This document shows, one piece after another, positions 1 through 22,031 of a stretch of 32,000 nucleotides of DNA. Positions within the stretch are counted from its first letter, which is position 1. Each line of letters starts with the position of its first letter. The position numbers were made by a program, and so were the translations under genes. Under the pieces are notes generated by a model. It was not told where the DNA came from. It ran no database searches and saw only the letters and a program-made list of their open reading frames with translations. This stretch comes from Wallemia ichthyophaga EXF-994 (Eukaryota > Fungi > Basidiomycota): assembly GCF_000400465.1 (NCBI RefSeq), contig NW_008806279.1, positions 146,107 through 178,106 on the forward strand, read 5' to 3'.

Positions 1-430
1 TTGAAGAATAAGATTCTCAGGAATGGTGATCATTTGTTCATCGCTCACATATTGGAAATGCCAGCAGATGATCAACAAACACACGAATCTAATCTTATTC
101 AATTAAAGCAAATTCGTGACCACGTCTTAGATAATCTACGGGCTATTTCAAATGATATCCTCCACTCTAACCTCCATGTTTGTCTATTTTGAAACATTTT
201 TGAACAATTTTCACTCACAAACGACACAGATCACTACCACTCTTCTAGTTATTAACCACGCTGATGCTAAAATAGCTATTTGTAGAATAGCTGATCATCA
301 CGCCGTTGATTTGATTGTCGTAGGTAGAAGAAGACGCGATGAAGGTGGTGGAGGTATACCAGGTGCATGTTCAACTTATATACTTAAACAATCACGCAAT
401 CCAGTTTTAATTGTTAACAAGTCTACTTGA
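1..430 (+). CDS. Universal stress protein (USP/UspA) domain protein, 5'-truncated; intron 178-229
   Basis: The GT(178)-AG(229) 52-nt intron joins the two ORF-track pieces in frame. The product has USP-like motifs: GDHLFIAHI, AICRIADHHAVDLIVVGRR, GACSTYILKQSRNPVLIV. Confidence 0.75.
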
Positions 431-453
431 TTTGATATAAATTACATAGTGTT

Positions 454-1557
454 TCAGTTGACACGGTTAAATGCTTTTTGCAGTTTCATTGCGAGGTTGA
501 GCATTTGAAGCTCATCATCTGCTCCATCGGTTAGCGCTTTGTCTGCTTCTGCGATGGCTAACACTGATTTAGCTTTTGAGGAGTCAGCTATACTAGAACT
601 GTCTATAACTTTGTCATGGAGCTGTGCAAGTATCTGAGCTGAAGCATAACCATTCAAATGGATTTGCTTGAGTGTGCTCTGTACCTCCTTAAAATTCTTT
701 TTGTTCGAACAAACAGACACTATGTTATCAATTATGTGTTGAGGTATAGTACCGGCAATTTCAGTAATCGTATCTGGAATTATTTTTGTCGATGTTGCTT
801 GATGTAAGCGTGTAGCTGATTGAAGGTATGTGATAGCCTGTCTGAGGTCGCCATGGGTTGTGCTTATGAGTGCATCAATTACACCATCCTCATAATCAAT
901 ATGCTCCTCTTTAGCGATAAATTCGAGTCTAGCTTTGGTATCAGTATCGTCAAGTGGCTTAAAGCGGAATTTTGAACAACGAGAAGCGACAGGTTCGATG
1001 ATTCTAAAGGGATTTAAGCCTAGAAAGCATTAAAATGCTTTTTTCCCACCTAGTAACGTAATTACAGACTAAGCAGAATCTAGTCGACTTGGAATAAGTT
1101 TCCATTGTACGCCTCAAAGCAGATTGAGCATCTTGAGTCATAGAATCAGCTTCATCGAGTATAATAATCTTGTAAGAAGGAGTATTGGATGAAGAAGAAG
1201 CCTTTGGTGCTTGTTTTGCAAAGTTTTTAATTTTATCGCGAACAACGCTAATACCACGCTCATCAGACGCGTTTAACTCGAGTACGCGACTATTTACGAG
1301 ATCCTGGCTTCAATTGGGGGTGAGTGGGTGTATAAAATTAAAACAACCAATCCCCACCCAAATAATTGCCTGGATAAAGCGAGAATAGTGGATGTTTTAC
1401 CAGTACCAGGTGGACCATAGAATAACATATGTGGTAAATTAGCGTTGTTGAGTTGTTTGTTAAGAACTCGTATTGTATGATCCTGTGCAGCTACGTCATT
1501 GATAGTGCGTGGTCTATATTTCTCTATCCAAGGTTTCAATGATTCGTTGGCTGGCAT
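454..1557 (-). CDS. RFC2: Replication factor C small subunit (yeast RFC2 / human RFC4 type); introns 1308-1357 and 1004-1049
   Basis: PWIEKYRP, Walker A GPPGTGKT, spliced [12 protein letters not shown], Walker [12 protein letters not shown] motif ([10 protein letters not shown]), GDLRQAI. Both introns are GT-AG and restore the frame. Confidence 0.93.
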
Positions 1558-1585
1558 GGCTGTTGGGAGTAACGATCAACGGTAA

Positions 1586-1602
1586 TATAAAATTATTTTA
1601 TA
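1586..1602. promoter_or_regulatory. Palindromic double TATA element (TATAAAA-TTA-TTTTATA) between divergent RFC2 and GLR1
   Basis: TATAAAA at 1586-1592 on + and its reverse complement at 1596-1602 are directly visible. A promoter function is inferred. Confidence 0.4.
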
Positions 1603-1604
1603 AA

Positions 1605-3151
1605 ATGTCTTTCACACGTGTGGCTGTAGGTTTTAATATCTTAAATCCCTCTTCACCTCTAACTCCCATCAGAGAAGATTCCACTCATCGTCGATCCCTC
1701 AAATGCCACCGATCAACAAACCAAGTCCTGGAATTTATGATATCGTCGTTATCGGCGGTGGCTCTGGTGGCTTGGGCGCTGCCAGACGCTCAGCTCAATA
1801 TGGCGCTAAGGCTGCAATCATCGAAGCTCAACCAAAACTTGGTGGCACATGCGTCAACGTTGGCTGCGTTCCAAAGAAGATTATGTGGCACGCTGCAGAT
1901 CTAGCACACCATGTGAACCACTCCCGCTACTACGAACTGGCTCAGGACGTTTCTGAATCATACACTCCCCACAAACCCAGATTCGCTTGGTCTGATTTTA
2001 AGCAAAAACGCGACGCTTATATTCATCGCTTAAACGGCATTTATGATAGAAATGTTGAAAAGGACGGCGTGGAGTATCATCATGGTTGGGGTGCTATCAA
2101 CAACCACCAAGGCACATCAGTTTCTGTTAAAAAGGACGACGGCAGCTCTTACGAAATTCCAACAAAGAATGTCGTCATTGCTGTTGGTGGTCACCCTCGC
2201 ATCCCTTACGAAATTCCAGGTGCACACCTCGGTATCACCTCAGATGGCTTCTTCGAATTAGAACATCAGCCACGCAGAGTCGCTGTTGTCGGTGCTGGCT
2301 ACATTGCCGTTGAATTGGCCGGCGTGCTTAACTCCCTCGGCTCTGAAACCTCCCTTCTCATAAGACAAGATAAGGTGTTGAGGAATTTCGACTCTATTAT
2401 CCAGGATACTGTGACGAGTGAGTCTCAGCGCCAAGGAATCAACTTAGTCAAGCACACAAATGTTAAGAGCATAGAGAAGACAAGTAGTGGTTTGTTGGTC
2501 CACACGGACAGCTCCACAAACCCACTAGAAGTTGACTGTCTGCTCTGGGCAGTTGGCAGAGAACCTGAAACTGACAAAGCTGGAGCTAAAGTTGCAGGCG
2601 CACAGACTGATTCAAAGAACAACATTCTCGTTAACAAGTACCAGTCTGTCCAATTAGATGAGAACACTTACTCGAAGAACGTTTTCGCTTTGGGTGATGT
2701 ACAAGGAAAAGCTGAATTGACACCAGTCGCTTTGGCCGCTGGTAGAAGACTCGGTAATAGACTATATGGACCTGCTGAGCTCAAGGATGATCACCTCAAC
2801 TATGAAAACATCCCATCTGTCATCTTCTCACATCCTCCAGCTGGATCGGTCGGTTTGAGTGAGGATGATGCCAGAAAGCAGTTTGGTGATAGTGTGAAGG
2901 TGTACACGTCCAAGTTCACTTCCATGTACTACTCAATGTTCCCTCAAGAGGAGAAGGAGCCAAGTGCTTTCAAGTTGATTGTCGTCGGCAAGGAAGAAAA
3001 GGTTGTTGGTTTGCACCTTGTAGGACAAGGCAGTGATGAAATGTTGCAAGGATTTGCAGTAGCTATCAAGATGGGTGCAACAAAGAAGGATTTCGATAAT
3101 ACTGTAGCTATTCATCCAACAGCTGCAGAGGAAGTTGTGACGATGACTTGA
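1605..3151 (+). CDS. GLR1: Glutathione reductase; main (cytosolic-type) start ATG 1703, plus a putative mitochondrial-presequence exon 1605-1625 and intron 1626-1672
   Basis: GGGSGG FAD motif, [11 protein letters not shown] redox disulfide, GAGYIA NADPH motif and C-terminal HPTAAEE. The upstream exon splices in frame to give [18 protein letters not shown]. Confidence 0.97.
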
Positions 3152-3387
3152 TGCATTATTAGTTGGTTACTTGTTTACTTGATGACTTAAACCTGATGAA
3201 AATTTGACCCAATTAAAGAGCAGTAATGTATATATGAATATAAAACACATAGAGAGTAAATTCGAGTAGAATATCCACCTAACACCACATGACATAAAAA
3301 TCTGCAGCCAATATCTTTTATGATGCAATCAAGACGACCTCTCCGGTTGTGAGAGACGACGACAAGCAAAATTGAGCAAAAATTGCA

Positions 3388-5060
3388 ATGAATGGATTGT
3401 CGGAAGAAATCTCAACGGAGCTTCCAGCATATGATGAAGGATTGGCGTTTTCAATAATGAATGCTTTATCAGAAGGGGCTGGCAAAGAAGATAAAGAAGA
3501 AGACGGTCGATCAGATTGCAGCTCAGAATACTGTGACGATGAAATGCACAAAGTCGATGTCGTATGCGATGACGATGATTGTATAGAGCCAGTTTGTGAA
3601 TCTGAAGAGCAGTTTCAGTCTTTTGTGAGTTCTATGTTTTGTCTTGGAGTATATCGCTGAATGAAAACAGCTGGAAAACTGCTGCAATGACTTTGATTTT
3701 CACAATAATGGTCATGTTAGTTGTTCTATTCCAAATTCAACAAGCACTATACCACCACTCATAAAATGCGAATGGGCAGGCTGTAATGCTCACTACGATA
3801 GCATGAATGACCTAATTGAGCATGTGCACAATTCACACCTCAATTTCGTAAATTTGGACTGTAAATGGGGTGGAACAGACTGCAATGTTTGTCCACCGTC
3901 TACGTCAACTAACACGCAGCCAGACGCGCATTCAATTCTCCGACACGTCCTGCAGGACCATTTGCAGGTGGCTGACGATCCACTGGCGTTGTCAGGAGCT
4001 GGGCAGGGTGCACAAGGCACCCAAGGCACACAACAAACCCAAAACAACTTGCATACCCTGCAAAATTCCGATAACCTTTCTATCGCAATTGCACATCACG
4101 ACTATCCTGATCTAAATCCATATGCTCACCATCTTCACGCGACAGCCTTCCCGCATCTTCACCCGCCGTCGATATGTCCCGCAGCTACGCACGCGAGTAT
4201 GAACACGAATATGAACACGAATATGAAGACAGAAACAGAAAAGGCACGCCCAATACACCCGCCTCACCCACCCAAACCACACCACCATCACCACTACCAC
4301 ACACCGCACTACCATCACCATCCATACCCACGTCCAAACACATGCACTATCGCTGGCCCACCGTACAGGTGCGACTGGCTCAATTGCAAGCAGCACGACG
4401 TCGAGTTTGGGTCGACGGAGGAACTCATGACCCACCTCTCTACCGAGCATGTTGGGTCTGGCAAGGCGGAGTATTCCTGTATGTGGAGAGGCTGCGAAAA
4501 GAGTGGGAGTGGGAGCGGGAGTAGTAGTAGCAGTACACGCGGACGAGTCTTTTCCAGCAGACAGAAAATAATGCGTCATCTCCAATCCCACACTGGTCAT
4601 CGACCGTTCGAGTGTCCAGTCTGCCACCGCTTCTTTAGCGAGGCTGCGACGCTGCAGCAGCACATGCGAAAGCATACGAGGTGAGTGTGTATTTGCGTCT
4701 TGTGTTGACAAAGAAAATGACAATAACTGATAATACACGCCTAGAGAAAAACCCTACGTGTGCGATTACCAAGGTTGTGGAAAAGCATTCGCTATTGCAG
4801 GCGCACTGACCATTCATAAACGCACTCATACCAACGAACGGCCGTTCAAATGCACTTTTTGCGATAAAGCCTTCTCTGAATCTTCTAATCTTAAGAAACA
4901 TCTTCGCACACATACTGGTGATAGACCTTTTGAATGCCCTCACCCGAGCTGCGATAAACGTTTCGCTAGGCCTGATCAAGTTACTAGACATCAGAATGTG
5001 CATTACAAACAATATAAGCATGATAATAACAATGTCAATAACAATAACAATAGCATTTGA
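3388..5060 (+). CDS. ZAP1: Zinc-responsive C2H2 transcription factor, Zap1/ZafA-like; introns 3625-3670 and 4681-4744
   Basis: GTGAGT...CAG and GTGAGT...TAG introns join ORFs 3388, 3803 and 4758 in frame. There are about 8 fingers, including CxW pairs (CEWAGC/CKWGG, CDWLNC/CMWRGC). The C-terminal fingers carry RQKIMRHL, ATLQQHMR, FAIAGALTIH and ESSNLKKH, paralleling the Zap1 DNA-binding fingers. The N-terminal region is acidic and Cys/His-rich. Confidence 0.8.
4198..4226 (+). repeat. 12-nt coding tandem repeat (ATGAACACGAAT) encoding MNTN-MNTN-MKT
   Basis: Seen directly: tatgaacacgaatatgaacacgaatatgaag. Confidence 0.8.
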
Positions 5061-5171
5061 GTTTATTTACTTCTATTCGTGTCGCATTCCCAGTACCCAT
5101 TTCTTTGTCTATCGCAATACATACACATGCACACTTTTACTAGAAAAGTCTAAATAAATTATTCTACCACA

Positions 5172-5230
5172 TTACAAGCTGTGTCACAAGCTACGTTACA
5201 AGCTAAGTTACATTCTACGTTACAAGACCC
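5172..5230. repeat. Imperfect 12-bp tandem repeat, about 5 copies (TTACAAGCTACG consensus), between the convergent ZAP1 and M50B 3' ends
   Basis: Units ttacaagctgtg / tcacaagctacg / ttacaagctaag / ttacattctacg / ttacaagaccc. Confidence 0.75.
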
Positions 5231-5232
5231 AT

Positions 5233-6590
5233 CTAGGTCGCTAAAATGATATCCGCGCGAGCTCTGTTGGGTTGCATTAGGAGTGTGATTACAGGTGACA
5301 CACTCTCACCTCTGATCTTGATATTTAAAGGCTACGATGCCGACTATAACACCACAAGCGAAGAATCCTACACTCTGCAGAAGCCAGAGTACACCCCAAC
5401 CTCTGGAAGGTATACAGTGAAAGGCATAGGACATCTGAACGGCATCCGAGCTGGGCACCTTTCTTATCAGGGTATCGTCTATGATATCCCAAATGGAATA
5501 CTTGAGAGGGACTTGTTAGACAGCTATGGAGTCGTGCTATGTACTCACTAGACAGCTCATCACACCAACAAACAAGATGAAGTAGCGCTGTACACTTTGT
5601 TAGTACCTCTCAGTCGTTTTCACTTCAACGCGTGCTCACGAGATATATTGCGTGCCTGGTTAGTTGATCCGTTAGCAAGTCAAATGATGAGCATATCAAC
5701 CAACTCAATGAACCAAAAGGCGATAAGGAGTGCCGCAAAGACAATAAGTAGGACATAGCCTGCGTGGTGTGAGGTTGAAGAAAAAAGTCAAGTCAAAGAT
5801 AAGGACTCACACAACCAGTCCTATGACGTCATTAAACATGTTCCAACGAGTAGAGTCAGTGAAGGCACTCACTCTGCGAGCCCAATAAATACAGACTAAG
5901 AAACACGCCGCTATAACAAAACAGGCGATCTTTGAAGCAAACGAGTCAAACCCGACGGCAATTAAAATGGCGCCGACTGTTGAGAATTAGGGGTGGTGCA
6001 TTATAGGAAGACTAAGGCTGCACGTACTCAAGCTACTACCCAGATAGCCAGCCGGGAGTGAAATGAATGACCAACCGCCTCTCATACGTGTTTCACCGCC
6101 TTCTGTAGGAATGTGAGTAATTATCCCACCCAAACAAGCTGATACTTTCCATGGGGATCCAGCTTTATACTCTCAATCTTAGCTCCCGTAAGTTTACCAG
6201 CAATGGCGTGGCTGAACTCGTGGAATCCGACGGTGAGCAGTTTGAATGGGTAAATAATCCATCTCTGGGGGATGTTAGAGGGTTTATAGAAATACCAACG
6301 CGTCATTTCAAACTAGATGCTGCTATCGACGTGTTGGCTTCAGATTACCAAGCCACTAACAAGAAAAGGGACGTGCCAGAGAATGGCTATGGCGACGACG
6401 TAGATACATGCTACGATAAGCGTCTCTTTTCTGGGTAAATCACTGGTCAGACACGTGATGAGAATGCAAGACGTCCTCACTGAGTGCTGTTCACGCTCAA
6501 GCTGTTGTCCTAGTATGCCTTTGTAAGCCTGCGTATGCAGCTCGACTAATATCGCACTCTTCTATGTAAATGATTTTCAGGCAAAAACAT
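5233..6590 (-). CDS. Peptidase M50B-like polytopic membrane protein; 12 exons / 11 introns (6510-6557, 6431-6480, 6265-6360, 6103-6149 [GA-AG], 5977-6027, 5821-5872, 5760-5810, 5656-5704, 5588-5639, 5501-5548, 5264-5309)
   Basis: Hand-spliced product: ...IYVVAIAILWHVPFLRWIIYPFKLLTVGFHEFSHAIAG...LDPHEGGETRMRGG...LPAGYLGSSLIG...RYFILFVGVMSCLYSIWDIIDD...SSDA...WGVLW. It has an HExxH zinc motif and multiple hydrophobic segments typical of fungal M50B-like proteins. The first exon (ATG 6590) is the least certain. Confidence 0.8.
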
Positions 6591-6671
6591 GGGATCGTCA
6601 ATCAACGGCTGATTTGGGATTTGGATTACGTGCACAGCATTACAAAAATAGCCAAATAAAGATAAATATTA

Positions 6672-8126
6672 CTACGAATTTACAAACGTCATCAAGGATC
6701 TACTAGGCTTGTACTGGCACTCGCGCAACTCCTCCAGAGCAACTTTGTAGCGTGAGTCACCGAGACTCTTGCAGCGACGAATAAGCGTCTCATAAACAGA
6801 CTGTGGTGGAATGTATCCCGCTGATTTCATCTCCTCGAGATAGTAGAAGGCGTCTTCGTATGTACTCTGCGTCAAACACAAGACAATCAGCCTCTCGAAT
6901 GTCCTCTTATCGGGTTGAATACCTTGTTTTTTCATCAATGTGAGCAGCTTGTCACCGAGACTTCTATTGGATGTGTCTATGCAGCCTGATAGCAGTATGT
7001 TGTAAGTTTCAGTTGATGGTTTGAGATTGAATGTGTCAACTTCCTGGAACGTGGACAGCGCACGATGTATATCACCCAATTTGATAGATGCTGATATTAT
7101 CACGTTGAGTGCAGATATGTCAATCGCTTCACCCTCCTTCTGAAGGTCTTGGAGCATGTAGTATGCATCGTCGACGCTATCTACAGATTTTGAAATGACA
7201 TCGAGGATAGGTTGAGCGGTTTCTAGCTGCGGAGCGATTTTGTTCTGTCTCATAACACCTAGCAAGATGAAAGGTTCTTTGATGTTGTCAGCTTTTGCAT
7301 GGGCTTCTATTACGGGTGCTAAATGGTGCTCTTGGAGGGGAATGAATTGGTTCCTGAGAGATGCAATTACTAAGGTGGATAGTTGAGGGTTTGAAGTTCT
7401 AGCGCAGGCGTTTAACACAAGGATACAAGTGCCTTCGTCGACGGCAGTACCATTCTCAGCAACAACAATTGACCAAGCGTGTTCAATTGCAGGCATGTAG
7501 TGGTGGTGAGCAGCGGATCTCAAAATGGTGAGCCAAGTATCCACAGTTAAAGATCTTGGTGAGGAAGATTCGAATTCGATCGCGATTTCGAAGGCTAGCC
7601 TTGGGGAGGCTAATTGGGAAGCTAGAGAGACGACGTTTGTAATGGATTGGATAGAAGGCTGAGAGGTATTGGAAAAAGAGTGTAAGAGCTTTAAACAGCC
7701 TTCTAAAGAGCGTCTGCGGGTGTTATAAGCGATGAGCTCGTCTAGGATGGCTGTAGAGGAAGTGTGACCAGATTGTTCCATTTTACCGAGTAAACTGAAG
7801 ATAGTTGAGGTATTTTGTTGCGTTCTTATGGCTGTCTGAGGATATCAATGTTAGAGAGAAGCTAAGGGGGATTACAAGGAACCAACTCTAATCAATTGAT
7901 TGTAGTGATCGATATTTGGAGTACTGATCTCACTAAACAAAGCACTCGATTCGCTAAACAGCCTATCGTTGTAACAAAGTTTTAGAAGAATAGAATAAGT
8001 CTCGTCGTTGGGTTCCAGCTGAGTTTGTGAAATGAAGTTTAGAGCGTTACAGAATCCATTTTTAGATTTCAGAAACCTTGAGATCCTAGTGTTTGCTTGA
8101 ATAATTGAAGGTAATCTATTAGACAT
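6672..8126 (-). CDS. Pentatricopeptide-repeat (PPR) protein, probably mitochondrial; intron 7836-7886
   Basis: Successive ~35-aa helical repeats (TYSILLKLC, SALNVIISASIKLGD, TYNILLSGC...PD, TFERLIVLC, VYETLIRRC). The N-terminus is basic and has no acidic residues (MSNRLPSIIQANTRISRFLKSK). The GT-AG intron joins ORFs 7872-8126 and 6672-7781 in frame. Confidence 0.85.
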
Positions 8127-8157
8127 TGGTGGTAGTACAACAGACTAGAGGAAACAC

Positions 8158-8500
8158 TTATAATTTGTTATTATCAATCAATTCTTTCAAGTTTGGCTTG
8201 GAATTTATAGATTTCTTAGTAAAATGTAAGCAAATGATAAATTCAATAGCACTACCTACTTCCAAGCACTGAGAGTATAATTTGAACAAGCCACCACAGT
8301 CCTTATCATATGTCTGCATACTGGTGTTTATATTCTGCTTTGAATATTCCTCGAGGTACTTGTCAAACCATTTATTGAAGCAGCTCTATACCCGTATGTT
8401 AGTCGTGGCTGTATATCACCCAATGCACATCACCAACATCATATTTATTCTTGAGCTCATTACACTCCCCATCCAAGCTCGATATCGATCCAATTTCCAT
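8158..8500 (-). CDS. MDM35: Mitochondrial intermembrane-space twin-CX9C protein Mdm35/TRIAP1, 81 aa; exons 8438-8500, 8260-8385, 8158-8214
   Basis: Spliced product [81 protein letters not shown]. It has two CX9C motifs and the Mdm35 signature KYDSCFNxWF. Both introns are GT-AG (52 and 45 nt), and the first has an ACTAAC branch site. Confidence 0.88.
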
Positions 8501-8551
8501 TCTCAACGTTTGTGTCCATCTCGTTCTAACTTCCCTCACTCCCAGACCACC

Positions 8552-11135
8552 ATGTCCTTCTCTAATCTAAAATCTATGATTAAATCTCTAAGGCAACAGA
8601 AAACTCTGGCTGATGAGAGGTCCCTCATTCAGCGTGAATCCGCAGCTATACGTACCGCTTTCAGGGAAGAAGATCACTTTATGAGACACGCCAACGTCGC
8701 TAAACTTATTTACATTCATATGCTTGGTTATCCCGCTCATTTCGGTCAGATTGAGTGCTTGAAACTAGCTGCTTCGTCGAAATTCATCGATAAGAGACTT
8801 GGTTACTTGGGAATTATGTTACTTCTCGATGAATCTCAGGAGGTCTTGACTTTGGTCACAAACAGCTTGAAGAATGACATGAATCATTCCAATATGTTCG
8901 TCGTTGGTCTCGCTTTGGCTACTTTTGCAAACATTTCTTCACAAGAAATGGCTAGAGACTTAGCACAAGAGGTTGAGAAGCTTTTATCCTCTACTAACTC
9001 CTACATACGTAAAAAAGCTGCCCTTTGTGCGATGCGTACTGTTAGGAAGCTCCCAGAGTTACACTACTACTACTTAAACCCAGCCAAATCCCTCCTCACC
9101 GATCGCAACCACGGCGTTCTCCTCTGTGCAGTCACTCTCATCACGAACATTGCTATCGCTCAACCTTCCACTCAATCTGACCTCAAGAAGGCTATACCAT
9201 TGCTCATCAGACAACTCAAGACTCTCATCACCCAGGGTTACAGTCCCGAGCATGATGTCTCCGGAATCACTGATCCCTTTTTACAAATCAAGATTCTTCA
9301 GCTCCTTCGCTTACTCTGCATCAACGATGTCGCCTCGTCTGAGTTAGTGAACGATATTCTCGCCCAAGTTGCAACCAATACCGATAATACCAAAAACGTG
9401 GGCAACTCCATCCTCTACGAAGCTGTCCTCTGTATTCTTGATATTGAAGCTGAATCTGGTTTGAGAGTGATGGCTATCAATATTCTCGGTAAATTCCTCG
9501 GCAACAAGGATAATAACATTAGATATGTTGCTCTCAACACCCTCAACAAGGTTGTCAGGATGGATACTCAAGCTGTACAGCGACACAGGAATATCATCAT
9601 TGATTGTTTACGCGATGGTGATGTATCTATACGTAGACGTGCACTTGAGCTCTCTTATGCGCTCATCAATCAATCCAACGTCAGAATGCTTACACGCGAA
9701 TTGCTTTCCTTCTTGGAGGTCTCAGATAATGAATTTAAGAACGGACTTACCTCGCAGATTTCTTTCGCTGCTGAGCGTTTCGCACCCAACAAGCGCTGGC
9801 ACATCGATACCATTCTCCGTATGCTCAAAGTAGTGAGTTGATATGTCTAATTAATGCAACACTGACTTATTACTGTTCAAGGCTGGCAACTATGTTCGTG
9901 AAGAAGTACTTTCTGCATTTGTGAGACTAGTATCACATACGCCGGAACTGCAAGCATATACGGTCCAAAAGCTATTTTCAGCACTACAAAAGGATGTTTC
10001 TCAAGAAGCGCTTACTTTGGCTGGATTGTGGACTATTGGAGAGTACGGCGATGTGCTTTTATCCGCAGGCAGCTACGAAGATGACGACCAAGTGAACCGA
10101 GTGACAGAGAATGACATCATCCAAGTGAGTGAAAAGAAATCAGTCCATGTTACAGAAAACGACATAGTTGAACTACTCGAATCGATCAACGCTTCACCAT
10201 ATGCCAACACGGTGATACGTCAGTATGTATTAGTGTCTGCAGCCAAGCTGTCTATCCGATTTGGGAAGACATTCAACGAGTCTCAAGATAAATTGCGCTG
10301 GCTAATAACATCGTATGAAACATCACCCGAGCTCGAACTGCAGCAACGTTCAATAGAATTCACACAGCTTCTCGATATGCCTGATTTGGTCGATGGGGTG
10401 TTGGAGCGGATGCCACCACCTGAGATTCGTGCATCCATTTTGGGTGGGACAGCGTCAGAAGCTAAGCCGGTCGGCAACACACGTTCTATAACGGATTCAT
10501 CGCTCGTGGATGTACTAGGTGACGAGTCGCCGAGTGTCGGTAATGGTAGTGGCAGTGCGGTTGCTGGTGGTGCTAGGGGTAATGCGCATGACCTGCTAGC
10601 TGATATATTTGGTACGGGTGAGTCACTTGGTGATGCGAGTGCAAGTTCGAGTGTGAGTGTTGGTGCAAATACACTTGTGCACCCGCAAGAGAAGTCGGAA
10701 AAGTCATCGGTGACCGACATAATGGGGCTTTTCGGACAAGCTGCTCCAGATGGCGATGAGAGCGAGAAGGCTAGCGAGGAGGTGAAGACGTACACAGCTT
10801 ACGACGCAAATGGACTGCTCATCACTCTCACACCCTCACCGGACGAAAGTAAGCGGAACATTGTGAACATCATGGCTACTTTTAGCGCGACAGGACTTGT
10901 CGAATGCGAAAAAGTAAATTTTCAGGCTGCTGTGCCCAAGTCTATGAAGCTGCAGATGCAGCCTATATCAAATACGACAGTGGGAACAGAGAGGGAAGAG
11001 ACGCAGCTGTTGCGTGTCATGGCACAGCCCCTACAGCATATACGCCTGCGGCTTCGCATCAGTTTTCAAGTTTCCGGAAGACAGGTGCAGAACCAGGTGG
11101 ATTTCTCGGAGCTTCCTAGTGATATATTGAAGTAG
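8552..11135 (+). CDS. APL4: AP-1 adaptor complex gamma subunit; intron 9833-9881
   Basis: [40 protein letters not shown]-like segment, ELQQRSIEF, and a C-terminal gamma-ear domain ([15 protein letters not shown]...RLRLRISF). The start is placed at ATG 8552 because the upstream part of the ORF-track ORF is antisense to MDM35. Confidence 0.95.
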
Positions 11136-18174: not shown

Positions 18175-19409
18175 ATGTCTGCTCGAATACCCAAGACTAT
18201 TTTCTCAGGAATCCAGCCTACGGGAATACCCCATGTAAGGATGAGGCAGATGTTGAAGACGCAAGCTAATTAAGCAGCTGGGTAACTACCTCGGTGCGCT
18301 CAAGAACTGGAAGAAGCTTCAGGATAGCGAGGCAAGGGATACGCGGCTGATTTACTCAATAGTCGGCTATCACGCTATCACACTCCCACAGCAGCCAGGC
18401 ATATTGCGGCAAGAGAGGCGCGAAATGATGGCTGCATTGCTCGCTATCGGCTTGGATCCTCACCGGTCAATCATCTTCCATCAAGACCAAGTAAGTTTAC
18501 TGATGGATCTAAACAACACGCTAATTGCGTCACTTTCAAAGGTCGCGCAACACACAGAGCTCGCCTGGATTCTCAATTCGTTCACTCCGGTGAATAAATT
18601 GCAGCGGATGACGACGTGGAAGGTGGGTCGTGATCACTGCAAGGCTCTCAAAGCTCATTAAATCTGAATGGAATTCAGTCTAAAATTGCAACGCTGAAGA
18701 ACTCTAATGATGTCAGTGAGATTGACGACAGTACACTCAATCTTGGTCTGCTATCCTATCCAGTGTTGCAGGCGGCCGATATAATGTTGTACAAGTGGGT
18801 AACGCGCTGGTTTAAGCCTCCTAGTATAACACCCTCTCCAGAGCTACACATGTACCTGTCGGAGAAGACCAGCAACAACATCTTGAATTGACGCGCGATT
18901 TGGCTGAACATTTTAACAGGATCTTTAAATGTCGCAAGTTTTTCCCTTTACCAACTCACCTGATCACTCCCGCTTCTCGCATTCTGAACCTCCGAGATCC
19001 ACTGTCTAAGATGTCTAAATCTCATCCACTGCCCACTTCCCGCATAATGATAACAGATTCGGATAGAGAAATAGCTTCTAAAATCAAGTCTGCAGTGACT
19101 GATTCAGACAGTGGAATCAATTTCGATGCGTTGAACAGACCAGGTGTGAGTAATTTGCTCACTATCTTGGCAGATTGCGAAGAATCCACGCCTGAGAAAG
19201 TATCAATCGGTTTAGAAAACTCATCGCAACTGAAAGAGGCAGTGGCTGAGGCGCTTGTTCAATCACTCTCACCTATACGAGGTGCCTTCCATCGTCTGTC
19301 AAATGAGCATCACTATTTAGATGAACTGGCCAAAAAAGGTCAGAAGCAGGCTGCCTATATTGCCAGCGACACCATGAACCACGTTAAAAAGCACGTAGGA
19401 TTGGATTAA
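18175..19409 (+). CDS. MSW1: Mitochondrial (bacterial-type) tryptophanyl-tRNA synthetase; introns 18235-18277, 18491-18541, 18623-18678, 18795-18841
   Basis: IFSGIQPTG, HIGH-type HLGNYLGA across intron 1, YPVLQAADI, VPVGEDQQQHLEL, KMSKS. Four GT-AG introns restore the frame. Confidence 0.93.
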
Positions 19410-19457: not shown

Positions 19458-22031
19458 CTATATTTCCATAAAGTGTTGTCTGTCACTACCCGTATTGACT
19501 GTATGTTCTATATTCTCATCGCCTTTTTCTTTCTCTGGAAGTGGATCGTCGCTGCTTATATGCTGACGTCCTTCAATACGCTGGGTTGAGAACTTAGGGA
19601 ACGATCTCTTGTACAAGTACAGAAGAACCGTGTCCATTTGTGTGACAGGGCCGTCAAAGTGCGCCTTGAAGTATCCATGCGTTCCGAGACTCTCCTTTAT
19701 ATGACCCACTCTGCCATATTTGGTACGTAATTCAATCGGTTTAAAGTAAGCAATATCATCTTTTTCTTTTGGTTAGCAATAGAATAGCTTATTACCAGCT
19801 CACTTACCTGGATTGAAGAAAAGATAACGAACAGTGACAGTCTTCTTGTGCACCTTGAATGGATGTCCCGACAAGATAATCCTCTTAGCAATGATACGTG
19901 TAGGATCTGCGTCCTTGAATGTACCACTACCAACGAGATAAGGTGGTTTGCCATCCTCTCTCTCACGCAAATATACGATAGGTACCTTGCCCCAAGTGAC
20001 TGGACCAAAGATGGTAGCTACACTCGCATCGCCGTGTCTAAGGTATCTTTCGAACTTGTGCACGTTATTCACACCCTTCGGTGTGTTCTGTGAATATATC
20101 GGCTGGATTTGGATCTTCCTAGGACCAATAATAGCCGTGAGTGTCTCCTTAGATTTGACTATACCACTGTACTCAGAGTTGCGCGTAATTGTCATATTTA
20201 CCAATGACTTTTTCTTCTCGTGGGGCAGGAGACTGAATATGACAAGAGGCAGATCTGGCGATTGTGTGGATTCGAGATCTCGATTGACATTCTTGATGTG
20301 TAGTGTCACCCTCTTACCAGGAGCAACTGAGACTGATTGCTCATCTTCATCCACACCTAGCTTGGCCCTCTTGATCACACGCTTCGACATCTGGTCGTAG
20401 TTTTCGAATTCGAACACTTTGCTCATCTCAATAGGCAAGTTCTCGTAAGGATCCCAAGGCGAAGTTCTGAAAGATTTGAGACCGCGATATCTTGCAAAAC
20501 GTTCACGCGCTGATACGTCTAATGGGGTGTCTATCTCATCAGGGAACTCTGCATCTTCTTTCTCTTGGTTGAGGTATTCTTTGTACTGTTTTTCTTCTTC
20601 GGCGTCGTCGAAATCTTGGAATTCTTGGTCACGGGTGTCCATCTCGATCTCTTCATCATCCTCATCATCCTCATCAGCATCGTCGTGTACTGGTTTGTCA
20701 TCTTCTGCCATCTCGGCTTCACCTTCCTCCTCTTCCTCGCTGTCTTCATCTTGATCGTCACTGAGATCGTCATCATTGTCGTCTACTATCCAAGCTGCTT
20801 GATAAGATGATGTACCTTTTGGAACCTTTTTAGATCTAGAAGCTTCCTCTTCTGCTTCAGCTTGCGCTTGAAGACGCTCTCCTTCGGCCATCTCTTCCTC
20901 TGTTGGCCAGGTCTGTTCATTGCCCATTGTATCAGCTTCGTTCTCAGACACGAGATCATCCTGCTCTTCTTGGTCTGGTTTGGCAAGCAAACCTGTGTCT
21001 ACTTGGTCCACTGACATGGAGTTACCATTTGGTTTGTGGTTGAGCTGGCTAGGATGAGGAGAGTTTGTGATCTGAATGGGTTGTGAAAGGGGTGTATTTA
21101 GTAAAAGAAACTAACCAACCTTTTCAATTTGATAATCACCAGAGTTTGGAATATGGATTAACCTGTTAGAGTTGAGGTGTTCTCCTCTAACAACGCCTGT
21201 GAGCTTGAGTAGGGTGCCATCCCACTCTGCTTGTTCAGTGAGCATGTAAGACCTGTAGTCTCTCCAACTTGGTGATTTAGGAGTACCTGTAGCTATAGAT
21301 CTAATAGTGTTTGAGAGTTCGTTGAGTTGATCTGCTGAAGCTAATTTTGAGACATTTGGGAAGAAGTAGCTCAAGAAGGAGTGTAAAGAGTGTCTAATTC
21401 CTGTATCTTGTTTCTTGTCAACATTAGATAAACCTTGAATAATACCAAAAGTTTCGGAACAAGATTGAGCTTGAATACACCTAAGAGTAGTTTCACCCCA
21501 TTCACCGACCTCATTTGTAGCAGATAAAATGGGTAAAATGTAATCGGCAATCTTTGCTGAATCTAGAATGGACATGAAAGTTTGATTATTTGAAGGGAAT
21601 TGAGGGATTATGAATTGAAATTGCTGATTGAATCGTTCAACTTTACATCTAAAAATGCCAAAACCCTGATATTCCAAAGCAGAATCATTTTCACCAACAG
21701 ATTCTAATAACGATTTTACAACGTTTAAACCATTTACATCCTCTGTAAGTGATAAAACGAGTATTATTCTAGGTGCAGCGAATCTGCCTTCAAATAAACG
21801 CTTTCCTTGTAAAACTGATTCTCTCTTATTAGATTGAATTTGTTTAGCGTGATTTCTACGCTGTTGCTTGTTCAATTGATTATTAGAGGATGAAGTTTTT
21901 GAAGAAGATTGCTTTGAATCTATTCTGCCCTTATTGACATTCTTAGTTGACCTCTTTGTAGAATTCTTTGACTTGAATTTCTTATTCGATTGCTTAAGCG
22001 TTGGCCTGTGACTGTGTGCAGATGTGCTCAT
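19458..22031 (-). CDS. TSR1: 40S ribosome biogenesis factor Tsr1 (Bms1/Tsr1 family); introns 21072-21119 and 19760-19807
   Basis: [87 protein letters not shown]. Confidence 0.95.

Follow-up and report, generated by a model that had tools for sequence, protein, structure and literature searches.

The Peptidase_M50B-like gene of the salt-loving fungus Wallemia ichthyophaga EXF-994 contains a 47-nt intron with GA-AG ends, which is probably a functional U2-type intron, fixed in the species and likely to be spliced sub-optimally; its splicing is judged here from genomic sequence. The intron lies on the minus strand of a 32,000-nt stretch of contig NW_008806279.1 (assembly GCF_000400465.1, positions 146,107 to 178,106), which is called the window below and to which all coordinates refer. 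Among the explanations that the original prediction offered for this unusual donor, a real GA donor is favoured by the occurrence of GA in four assemblies, by GT introns at the orthologous position and by the intact and constrained host gene. The intron belongs to a rare but already known splice-site class, and no new mechanism is involved.

Structure of the intron and its host gene

The host gene is assigned by its sequence to the Peptidase_M50B-like family PF13398, and its catalytic activity is predicted. The profile was matched over its full length (positions 2-200 of 201) with 182 bits against a cut-off of 26 and an E-value of 1e-53, and the HEFSH zinc motif (HExxH) lies in exon 4 at 6222..6208 on the minus strand. 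The protein is 87.5% identical to its W. mellicola counterpart over aligned residues, and a BLASTP search with an N-terminally trimmed query gave 86% identity to the same protein. The coding sequence, the two exons that flank the GA-AG intron and the signals of the intron are as follows.

5233..6590, minus: Peptidase_M50B-like coding sequence, 12 exons, 255 aa (exon model and Pfam)
6590-6558, 6509-6481, 6430-6361, 6264-6150, 6102-6028, 5976-5873, minus: exons 1 to 6
5820-5811, 5759-5705, 5655-5640, 5587-5549, 5500-5310, 5263-5233, minus: exons 7 to 12
6150..6264, minus: exon 4, encoding RWIIYPFKLLTVGFHEFSHAIAGKLTGAKIESIKLDPH plus one G; it contains HEFSH and ends in ...LDPH plus G
6103..6149, minus: GA-AG intron, 47 nt, phase 1; inserted cleanly when compared with W. 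mellicola and W. hederae
6142..6149, minus: donor GAAAGTAT, following exonic ATG, with the non-canonical A of position +2 at 6148
6113..6117, minus: branch motif CTCAC, whose A at 6114 is the branch point and lies 12 nt ahead of the 3' splice site
6103..6105, minus: CAG acceptor, read from the sequence
6028..6102, minus: exon 5, encoding (E)GGETRMRGGWSFISLPAGYLGSSL and starting with AA GGC GGT GAA

With slashes marking the splice sites, the minus strand reads ...CTG GAT CCC CAT G/GAAAGTATCAGCTTGTTTGGGTGGGATAATTACTCACATTCCTACAG/AA GGC GGT GAA. Each end of the intron is flanked by a G, which leaves its boundary uncertain by one base (G/GA..AG/A or /GG..CA/G); GA..AG is preferred because only this form has a normal acceptor. 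The donor hexamer fits the consensus at five of its six positions, the length is typical, a branch motif and a YAG acceptor are present, and two related species have an intron in this place, which together exceeds what chance would give. All ten remaining introns are GT-AG and have CTNAY-type branch motifs, some 10-20 nt before the acceptor; nine of them measure 46-52 nt and one, intron 3, measures 96 nt. The 47-mer fits this pattern in every respect but base +2, and intron 7 has the same CTCAC motif at a similar distance. The earlier description of a G/GAAAGT-type donor (the consensus GTAAGT with T to A at +2), a CTCAC branch site and a CAG acceptor was thus confirmed in all its parts. The length had also been called exactly modal: it does fall within the 46-52 nt range of the gene's introns, but the wording is loose, as the other introns vary and include the one of 96 nt. 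The published mean intron length for W. ichthyophaga is 61-68 nt. As the 47-mer occurs only once in the window, an origin from a repeat or introner was rejected.

Removal of the insert restores the frame, its donor, branch site, acceptor and length are those of the class, the base is present in the genome, and a homologous intron exists in relatives. By these sequence features, the insert qualifies as a U2-type GA-AG intron.

Authenticity of the donor base

Three further, independent assemblies of W. ichthyophaga were fetched by exact look-up of the neighbouring PPR open reading frame (ORF) and of an antisense ORF: GCA_004918755.1 from NCBI, and SRR25394091 and SRR25393958 from Logan. The PPR ORF (6675..7781, minus) is 99-100% identical to W. 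ichthyophaga E3P92_00776, which identifies the species of the window, 86% identical to a Logan assembly, and 79% identical to W. hederae. All three assemblies have GGAAAGTATC at the site, so that the donor is identical in four of four, the window included. Six other positions in the M50B gene separate them from the window and define at least four haplotypes, all with GA; four of these single-nucleotide polymorphisms (SNPs) are intronic, two are synonymous and none is non-synonymous.

The view that the true base is T, and that the A comes from faulty sequencing or assembly or is private to one strain, has only prior probability in its favour, GA donors making up about 0.01% of introns in surveys (PMC10668435; PMC7072748, PMC5714493). 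It is contradicted by the A read in four independent assemblies with different runs and linked SNPs, and is extremely improbable. Both the error at 6148 and the strain-specific splice mutation that had been considered for this site are therefore refuted, the latter for the sampled strains. The A at +2 is genuine and is fixed among the sampled W. ichthyophaga strains.

Requirement for the GA donor

All GT, GC and GA donors were combined with all AG acceptors across exons 4 and 5 with the frame kept open, and 6149/6103 was the sole pair yielding LDPHEGGETRMRGG. This peptide is identical in W. mellicola, in W. hederae, in the closest relative (L015, assembly SRR25399871) and in a low-GC Wallemia-like fungus from a metagenome (L012, assembly ERR3209793). 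In an alignment of 121 basidiomycete homologues, conservation is 98-100% at its residues L79, D80, P81, E83, G84, G85, T87, M89, G91, and G92. Read-through of the unspliced sequence ends at the TAA at 6122..6120, after ...LDPHGKYQLVWVG. The read-through ORF of 61 aa, made of exon 4 and the first part of the intron, had no exact match among recorded sequences. The claim that removal of the GA-AG intron is needed for the conserved segment behind HEFSH is hence upheld. Three GT donors near the site have to be weighed against the GA donor.

6165..6170, minus: GTATAA, 68-nt intron to 6103; SIKLDPHE is replaced by K
6192..6197, minus: GTAAAC, 95-nt intron to 6103; deletes GKLTGAKIESIKLDPH
6140..6145, minus: GTATCA, out of frame with 6103 and in frame only with the AG at 6081 (65 nt), deleting EGGETRMR

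GTATAA at 6170 had been taken as the only in-frame GT alternative, and this does not hold, as 6197 to 6103 and 6145 to 6081 are also in frame. The frameshift ascribed to the nearby aaaGTATC applies to the 6103 acceptor; with the AG at 6081 the frame is kept. There are consequently three in-frame GT-AG combinations by which the gene could yield a shortened isoform and leave the GA unused, and G/GTAAAC at 6197 is a reasonable donor. However, each of them removes residues of the segment LDP.EGG.T.M.GG that are 98-100% conserved in the 121 homologues, and the codons that would turn intronic are still constrained, with amino acids identical to those of the relatives. Moreover, the introns would measure 65-95 nt and so exceed nine of the ten canonical introns (46-52 nt), only intron 3 (96 nt) being as long, and the 6081 acceptor lies inside conserved coding sequence without a branch motif placed for it. 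Use of a nearby canonical donor is thus very unlikely.

Removal by the minor spliceosome, as a U12-type intron starting with the GTATC at 6145, was also considered, since aaaGTATCagc loosely resembles the donor RTATCCTT. The resemblance covers only five of eight positions, and no in-frame acceptor has a TCCTTAAC-like branch site at a distance of 10-15 nt. The one pairing that keeps the frame, 6145 to 6081, costs EGGETRMR, and the orthologous introns of L012 and L015 have plain U2-type GT donors. To our knowledge, the minor spliceosome was lost in Dikarya. The U12-type reading was rejected on motif and frame, and its probability is close to nil.

Strength of the donor and known GA donors

The donor ATG/GAAAGTAT matches CAG/GTAAGTAT, the consensus complementary to U1, at 8 of 11 positions, and positions +3 to +8 are a perfect match. 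The other ten M50B introns of W. ichthyophaga match the donor consensus at only 3-7 positions, and none of 53 canonical M50B introns from five taxa exceeds eight matches although the T at +2 is counted for them, a ranking that was made post hoc. From these matches, the rest of the donor looks able to compensate for the A at +2. Short fungal introns are thought to be recognised by intron definition.

In human reporter assays, GA donors are usable in the context NN-AAGTAT, but they are weak and depend on enhancers (PMC6280755). The reporter of Erkelenz et al. 2018 in that work, CAG/NNAAGTAT, shares AAGTAT at +3 to +8 with the donor of the window. In contrast, it was assayed in human cells and required SRSF7 and TIA1 enhancer elements, whereas the window intron is a 47-nt fungal intron.

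Functional GA donors are also known from natural genes. In Trema orientalis, intron 12 of SYMRK acquired GA by a single base change and the gene is fully functional (PMC10668435), and functional constitutive GA donors occur in the copepod Eurytemora affinis and in Oikopleura dioica (PMC5714493, PMC7072748). The introns of all three share with the window intron a single departure at +2 in an otherwise consensus U2-type donor, and exact removal is needed for a conserved protein in each case. The A at +3 of the window donor is likewise present in nearly all copepod GA donors. On the other hand, the Trema allele arose by a point change from GC, a commoner donor, whereas the ancestor in the window was GT; the exon before the window donor ends in TG, whereas copepod sites have an obligate AG; and the host here is a fungus without known commonness of GA donors, in which splicing is deduced from sequence. 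According to papers that cite the work on FGFR genes, the GA donors of those genes resemble the window intron in being used by the major spliceosome and in their strong complementarity at the other positions. The FGFR sites are alternatively spliced, however, and reportedly need a canonical site that lies 6 nt upstream; the window intron is preceded by CCCATG, with no GT at that distance, and is constitutive by necessity.

Origin of the intron among relatives

W. mellicola (two assemblies) and W. hederae have no intron at the site, where GAT CCN CAY GAA GGA is uninterrupted. L012 has a 58-nt intron in the same codon and phase, CAT G/GTAACG...AAAG/AG GGG. L015 has a 47-nt GT-AG intron 2 nt upstream, CCA CA/GTTCGT...CTCAAG/C GAA (L015:4649-4695). 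A comparison with sister species had been proposed earlier, and it thus finds one relative with GT at the identical site and another with a shifted GT intron. The orthologues of L015 and W. hederae were modelled: both are intact, encode 256 aa and have GT-AG introns throughout.

The span from GATCC to GGT is 65 nt in both L015 and the window, which is suggestive of apparent intron sliding with the His-Glu coding kept. The orthologues therefore comprise an intron in phase 1 of the Glu codon (W. ichthyophaga and L012), an intron in phase 2 of the His codon (L015), and absence (W. hederae and W. mellicola). In the usual descriptions of sliding, the intron is GT-AG at either position, whereas one of the states here is GA.

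L012 is the most divergent of the five taxa by protein distance, and the simplest history therefore starts from an ancestral GT-AG intron at the site. W. mellicola and W. hederae would each have lost this intron precisely and independently, L015 would have shifted it by 2 nt, and T would have changed to A at +2 in the lineage of W. ichthyophaga. Parallel intron gain at the same site is a possible alternative history. It is rather unlikely that GA was present already in the common ancestor with L015, which would then have repaired the intron by moving both splice sites 2 nt upstream; if so, the locus would capture in nature how an intron slides by way of a non-canonical intermediate.

The intron matrix of the M50B gene in the five taxa displays substantial intron turnover within the genus. 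Three adjacent introns that L015, W. hederae and W. mellicola share, located behind IIDD, IPSR, and G.LW, are missing from W. ichthyophaga in exon 11 (5310..5500, minus), which looks like concerted loss of adjacent 3' introns. Outside the genus, phase-1 introns lie close by: in Gloeophyllum, Auricularia, and Cantharellus the intron splits the Pro codon of LDP, 6 nt upstream of the position used in Wallemia, and in Tilletia it splits the Asp codon, 9 nt upstream. The region is a hotspot of near-coincident intron positions, and homology of these introns with the Wallemia intron is possible.

Proposed splicing of the GA-AG intron

The ancestor that W. ichthyophaga shares with other Wallemia lineages would already have had an ordinary GT-AG intron at the site; the T at +2 would then have been replaced by A and the change fixed in W. 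ichthyophaga. U1, and later U6, could still locate the site through the other informative positions, which are consensus (G at -1, G at +1, and AAGTAT at +3 to +8), while the CTCAC branch site and the CAG acceptor would act normally. Cleavage at G/GA and ligation to /AA would join LDPH to EGGETRMRGG and yield the full zinc peptidase-like membrane protein of 255 aa. Removal would be less efficient than that of the neighbouring introns, with a possible throttle on expression as a result; lower efficiency is expected because A at +2 is known to impair splicing, especially its second step.

Selection on the host gene

Against W. mellicola, the proportion of non-synonymous differences (pN) is 0.079 and that of synonymous differences (pS) is 0.876, the latter saturated; for the part of the gene behind the junction, pN is 0.072 and pS 0.846. 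In the lineage of the window, 36 synonymous codon changes stand against 9 non-synonymous ones in a three-taxon comparison, and 19 against 4 in a strict four-taxon comparison. No stop, frameshift or other broken splice site was found in the 12 exons and the ten other introns of the gene in the four haplotypes, and microexons of 10 and 16 nt are retained. The M50B gene is under purifying selection.

These data bear on the view that the change at +2 is a fixed lesion that disables removal of the intron, or nearly so, and that the gene is a recent unitary pseudogene or a strong hypomorph. Neither further lesions nor a relaxed ratio of non-synonymous to synonymous rates (dN/dS), the marks of a pseudogene, were found, pN being far below pS; recent inactivation is nevertheless compatible with this. 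The lesion is further opposed by the maintenance of both microexons and by the restriction of polymorphism to intronic or synonymous positions. The changes of the lineage are mostly synonymous or conservative hydrophobic swaps, the latter making up most of its specific replacements, and the donor consensus is unusually complete outside +2, as expected under maintained splicing.

Evidence against efficient splicing

Several observations weigh against a functional intron. The first is that A in place of U at +2 blocks the second splicing step in classical yeast and mammalian work. GA also ranks low among non-canonical donors in human assays (GC>TT>AT>GA>GG>CT; PMC6280755). The second concerns the rate of evolution. 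W. ichthyophaga has 18 unique residues where the other three taxa agree, compared with 4 in L015, 9 in W. hederae, and 3 in W. mellicola, and a relative-rate test against L015 counts 26 versus 7 replacements with W. hederae as outgroup (p=0.0013). If W. mellicola serves as outgroup, the counts are closer, at 20 versus 11, and a milder excess in the same direction is seen in the adjacent PPR gene (24 versus 13). The excess could reflect a generally faster lineage with perhaps some relaxation, and it does not decide the matter. In addition, the change from T to A cannot be placed on its branch, and long-term constraint is therefore no proof of present function.

The third concerns transcripts. 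A protein from a spliced W. ichthyophaga transcript was absent from a database of 5.8 billion proteins, in which the full-length query gave nothing above 86% identity and a 98-aa junction query gave no such protein either. The spliced junction had no matches in JGI metagenome and metatranscriptome contigs. The genomic site with any base at +2 likewise had no matches in JGI metagenomes. No M50B model was found in the proteomes of annotated W. ichthyophaga strains. Public RNA sequencing (RNA-seq) data exist for this species at 10% and 30% NaCl, with junctions called by TopHat (PMC3849046).

Gene annotation is, however, poor for this gene across the genus. The all-GT orthologue of W. hederae is also mis-modelled (190 aa), and two W. 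mellicola models are wrong, one reading through an intron and the other fused to the PPR gene. Because these models fail as well, the missing W. ichthyophaga model is not attributable to GA alone. The microexons are the likely cause of the wrong or missing public models. TopHat is not known to report junctions other than GT-AG, GC-AG, and AT-AC, and gene predictors assume GT or GC donors.

A fixed lesion would agree with the place of GA among the weakest donors (PMC6280755), with the very reduced gene set of W. ichthyophaga (4884 genes), with the lineage-specific replacements and with the lack of a gene model and of a transcript-derived protein. The microexons explain the missing models equally well, and the intact exons and introns described above speak against it. 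Loss of function is thus an unlikely explanation, though one with appreciable weight, and a functional GA-AG intron with sub-optimal splicing is preferred.

GA donors elsewhere in the window

A loose filter of motifs plus ORFs over the whole window returned 184 GT, 209 GA, 139 GC, and 148 GG candidate donors and hence gave no discrimination. A strict filter, which is insensitive and was applied to the window only, left three GA candidates: the intron in question, 19196, and 21313..21369. The GAAAGTAT at 19196..19242 on the plus strand, with a CAG 47 nt on, was rejected as a chance match, as it lies inside an uninterrupted ORF (...STPEKVSIGLENSS...). The candidate at 21313..21369 on the plus strand has a GAGAGT donor, ttt/GAGAGTTC, and 57 nt later GTAG/ctc, in phase 0. 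Rfam and tRNA scans of the window found nothing, and hence no small nuclear RNA gene there.

It is rather doubtful that W. ichthyophaga tolerates GA donors generally, like Eurytemora and Oikopleura, and that the intron is the tip of a hidden class. If this were true, such introns would be missed by canonical-only junction calling and by gene predictors, and they could be one reason why roughly 12% of BUSCOs are missing or incomplete.

Other features of the locus

The two microexons of the M50B gene are at conserved positions in W. ichthyophaga, L015, W. hederae, and W. mellicola.

5811..5820, minus: microexon of 10 nt, GACTGGTTGT, encoding DWL plus 1 nt
5640..5655, minus: microexon of 16 nt, encoding (E)HAIYL

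The gene order adaptin, UPF0203, PPR, M50B, C2H2 zinc finger, and pyridine-nucleotide disulphide oxidoreductase is the same in W. ichthyophaga and W. mellicola (window positions 1..9000 against one W. mellicola assembly). The PPR gene (6672..7781, minus) is annotated inconsistently within the species, as a bare ORF of 369 aa in GCA_004918755.1 and as a spliced model of 467 aa in another strain. Two antisense ORFs inside the M50B gene, 6151..6438 and 5246..5551 on the plus strand (95 and 101 aa), are listed as genes on Logan contigs. Neither of these two ORFs has a Pfam match, and they are almost certainly gene-caller artefacts.

Significance for Wallemia and fungal introns

The M50B gene is absent or mis-modelled in annotated Wallemia proteomes, and GA donors and microexons of 10-16 nt are features to which standard fungal gene predictors and canonical-only aligners are blind. 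The intron would be a natural fungal GA-AG case with a visible history, comprising a GT ancestor, a fixed GA, a sister with GT slid by 2 nt, and two clean losses. It would also serve as a natural experiment on how far the rest of the donor can compensate for position +2 in very short, intron-defined fungal introns.

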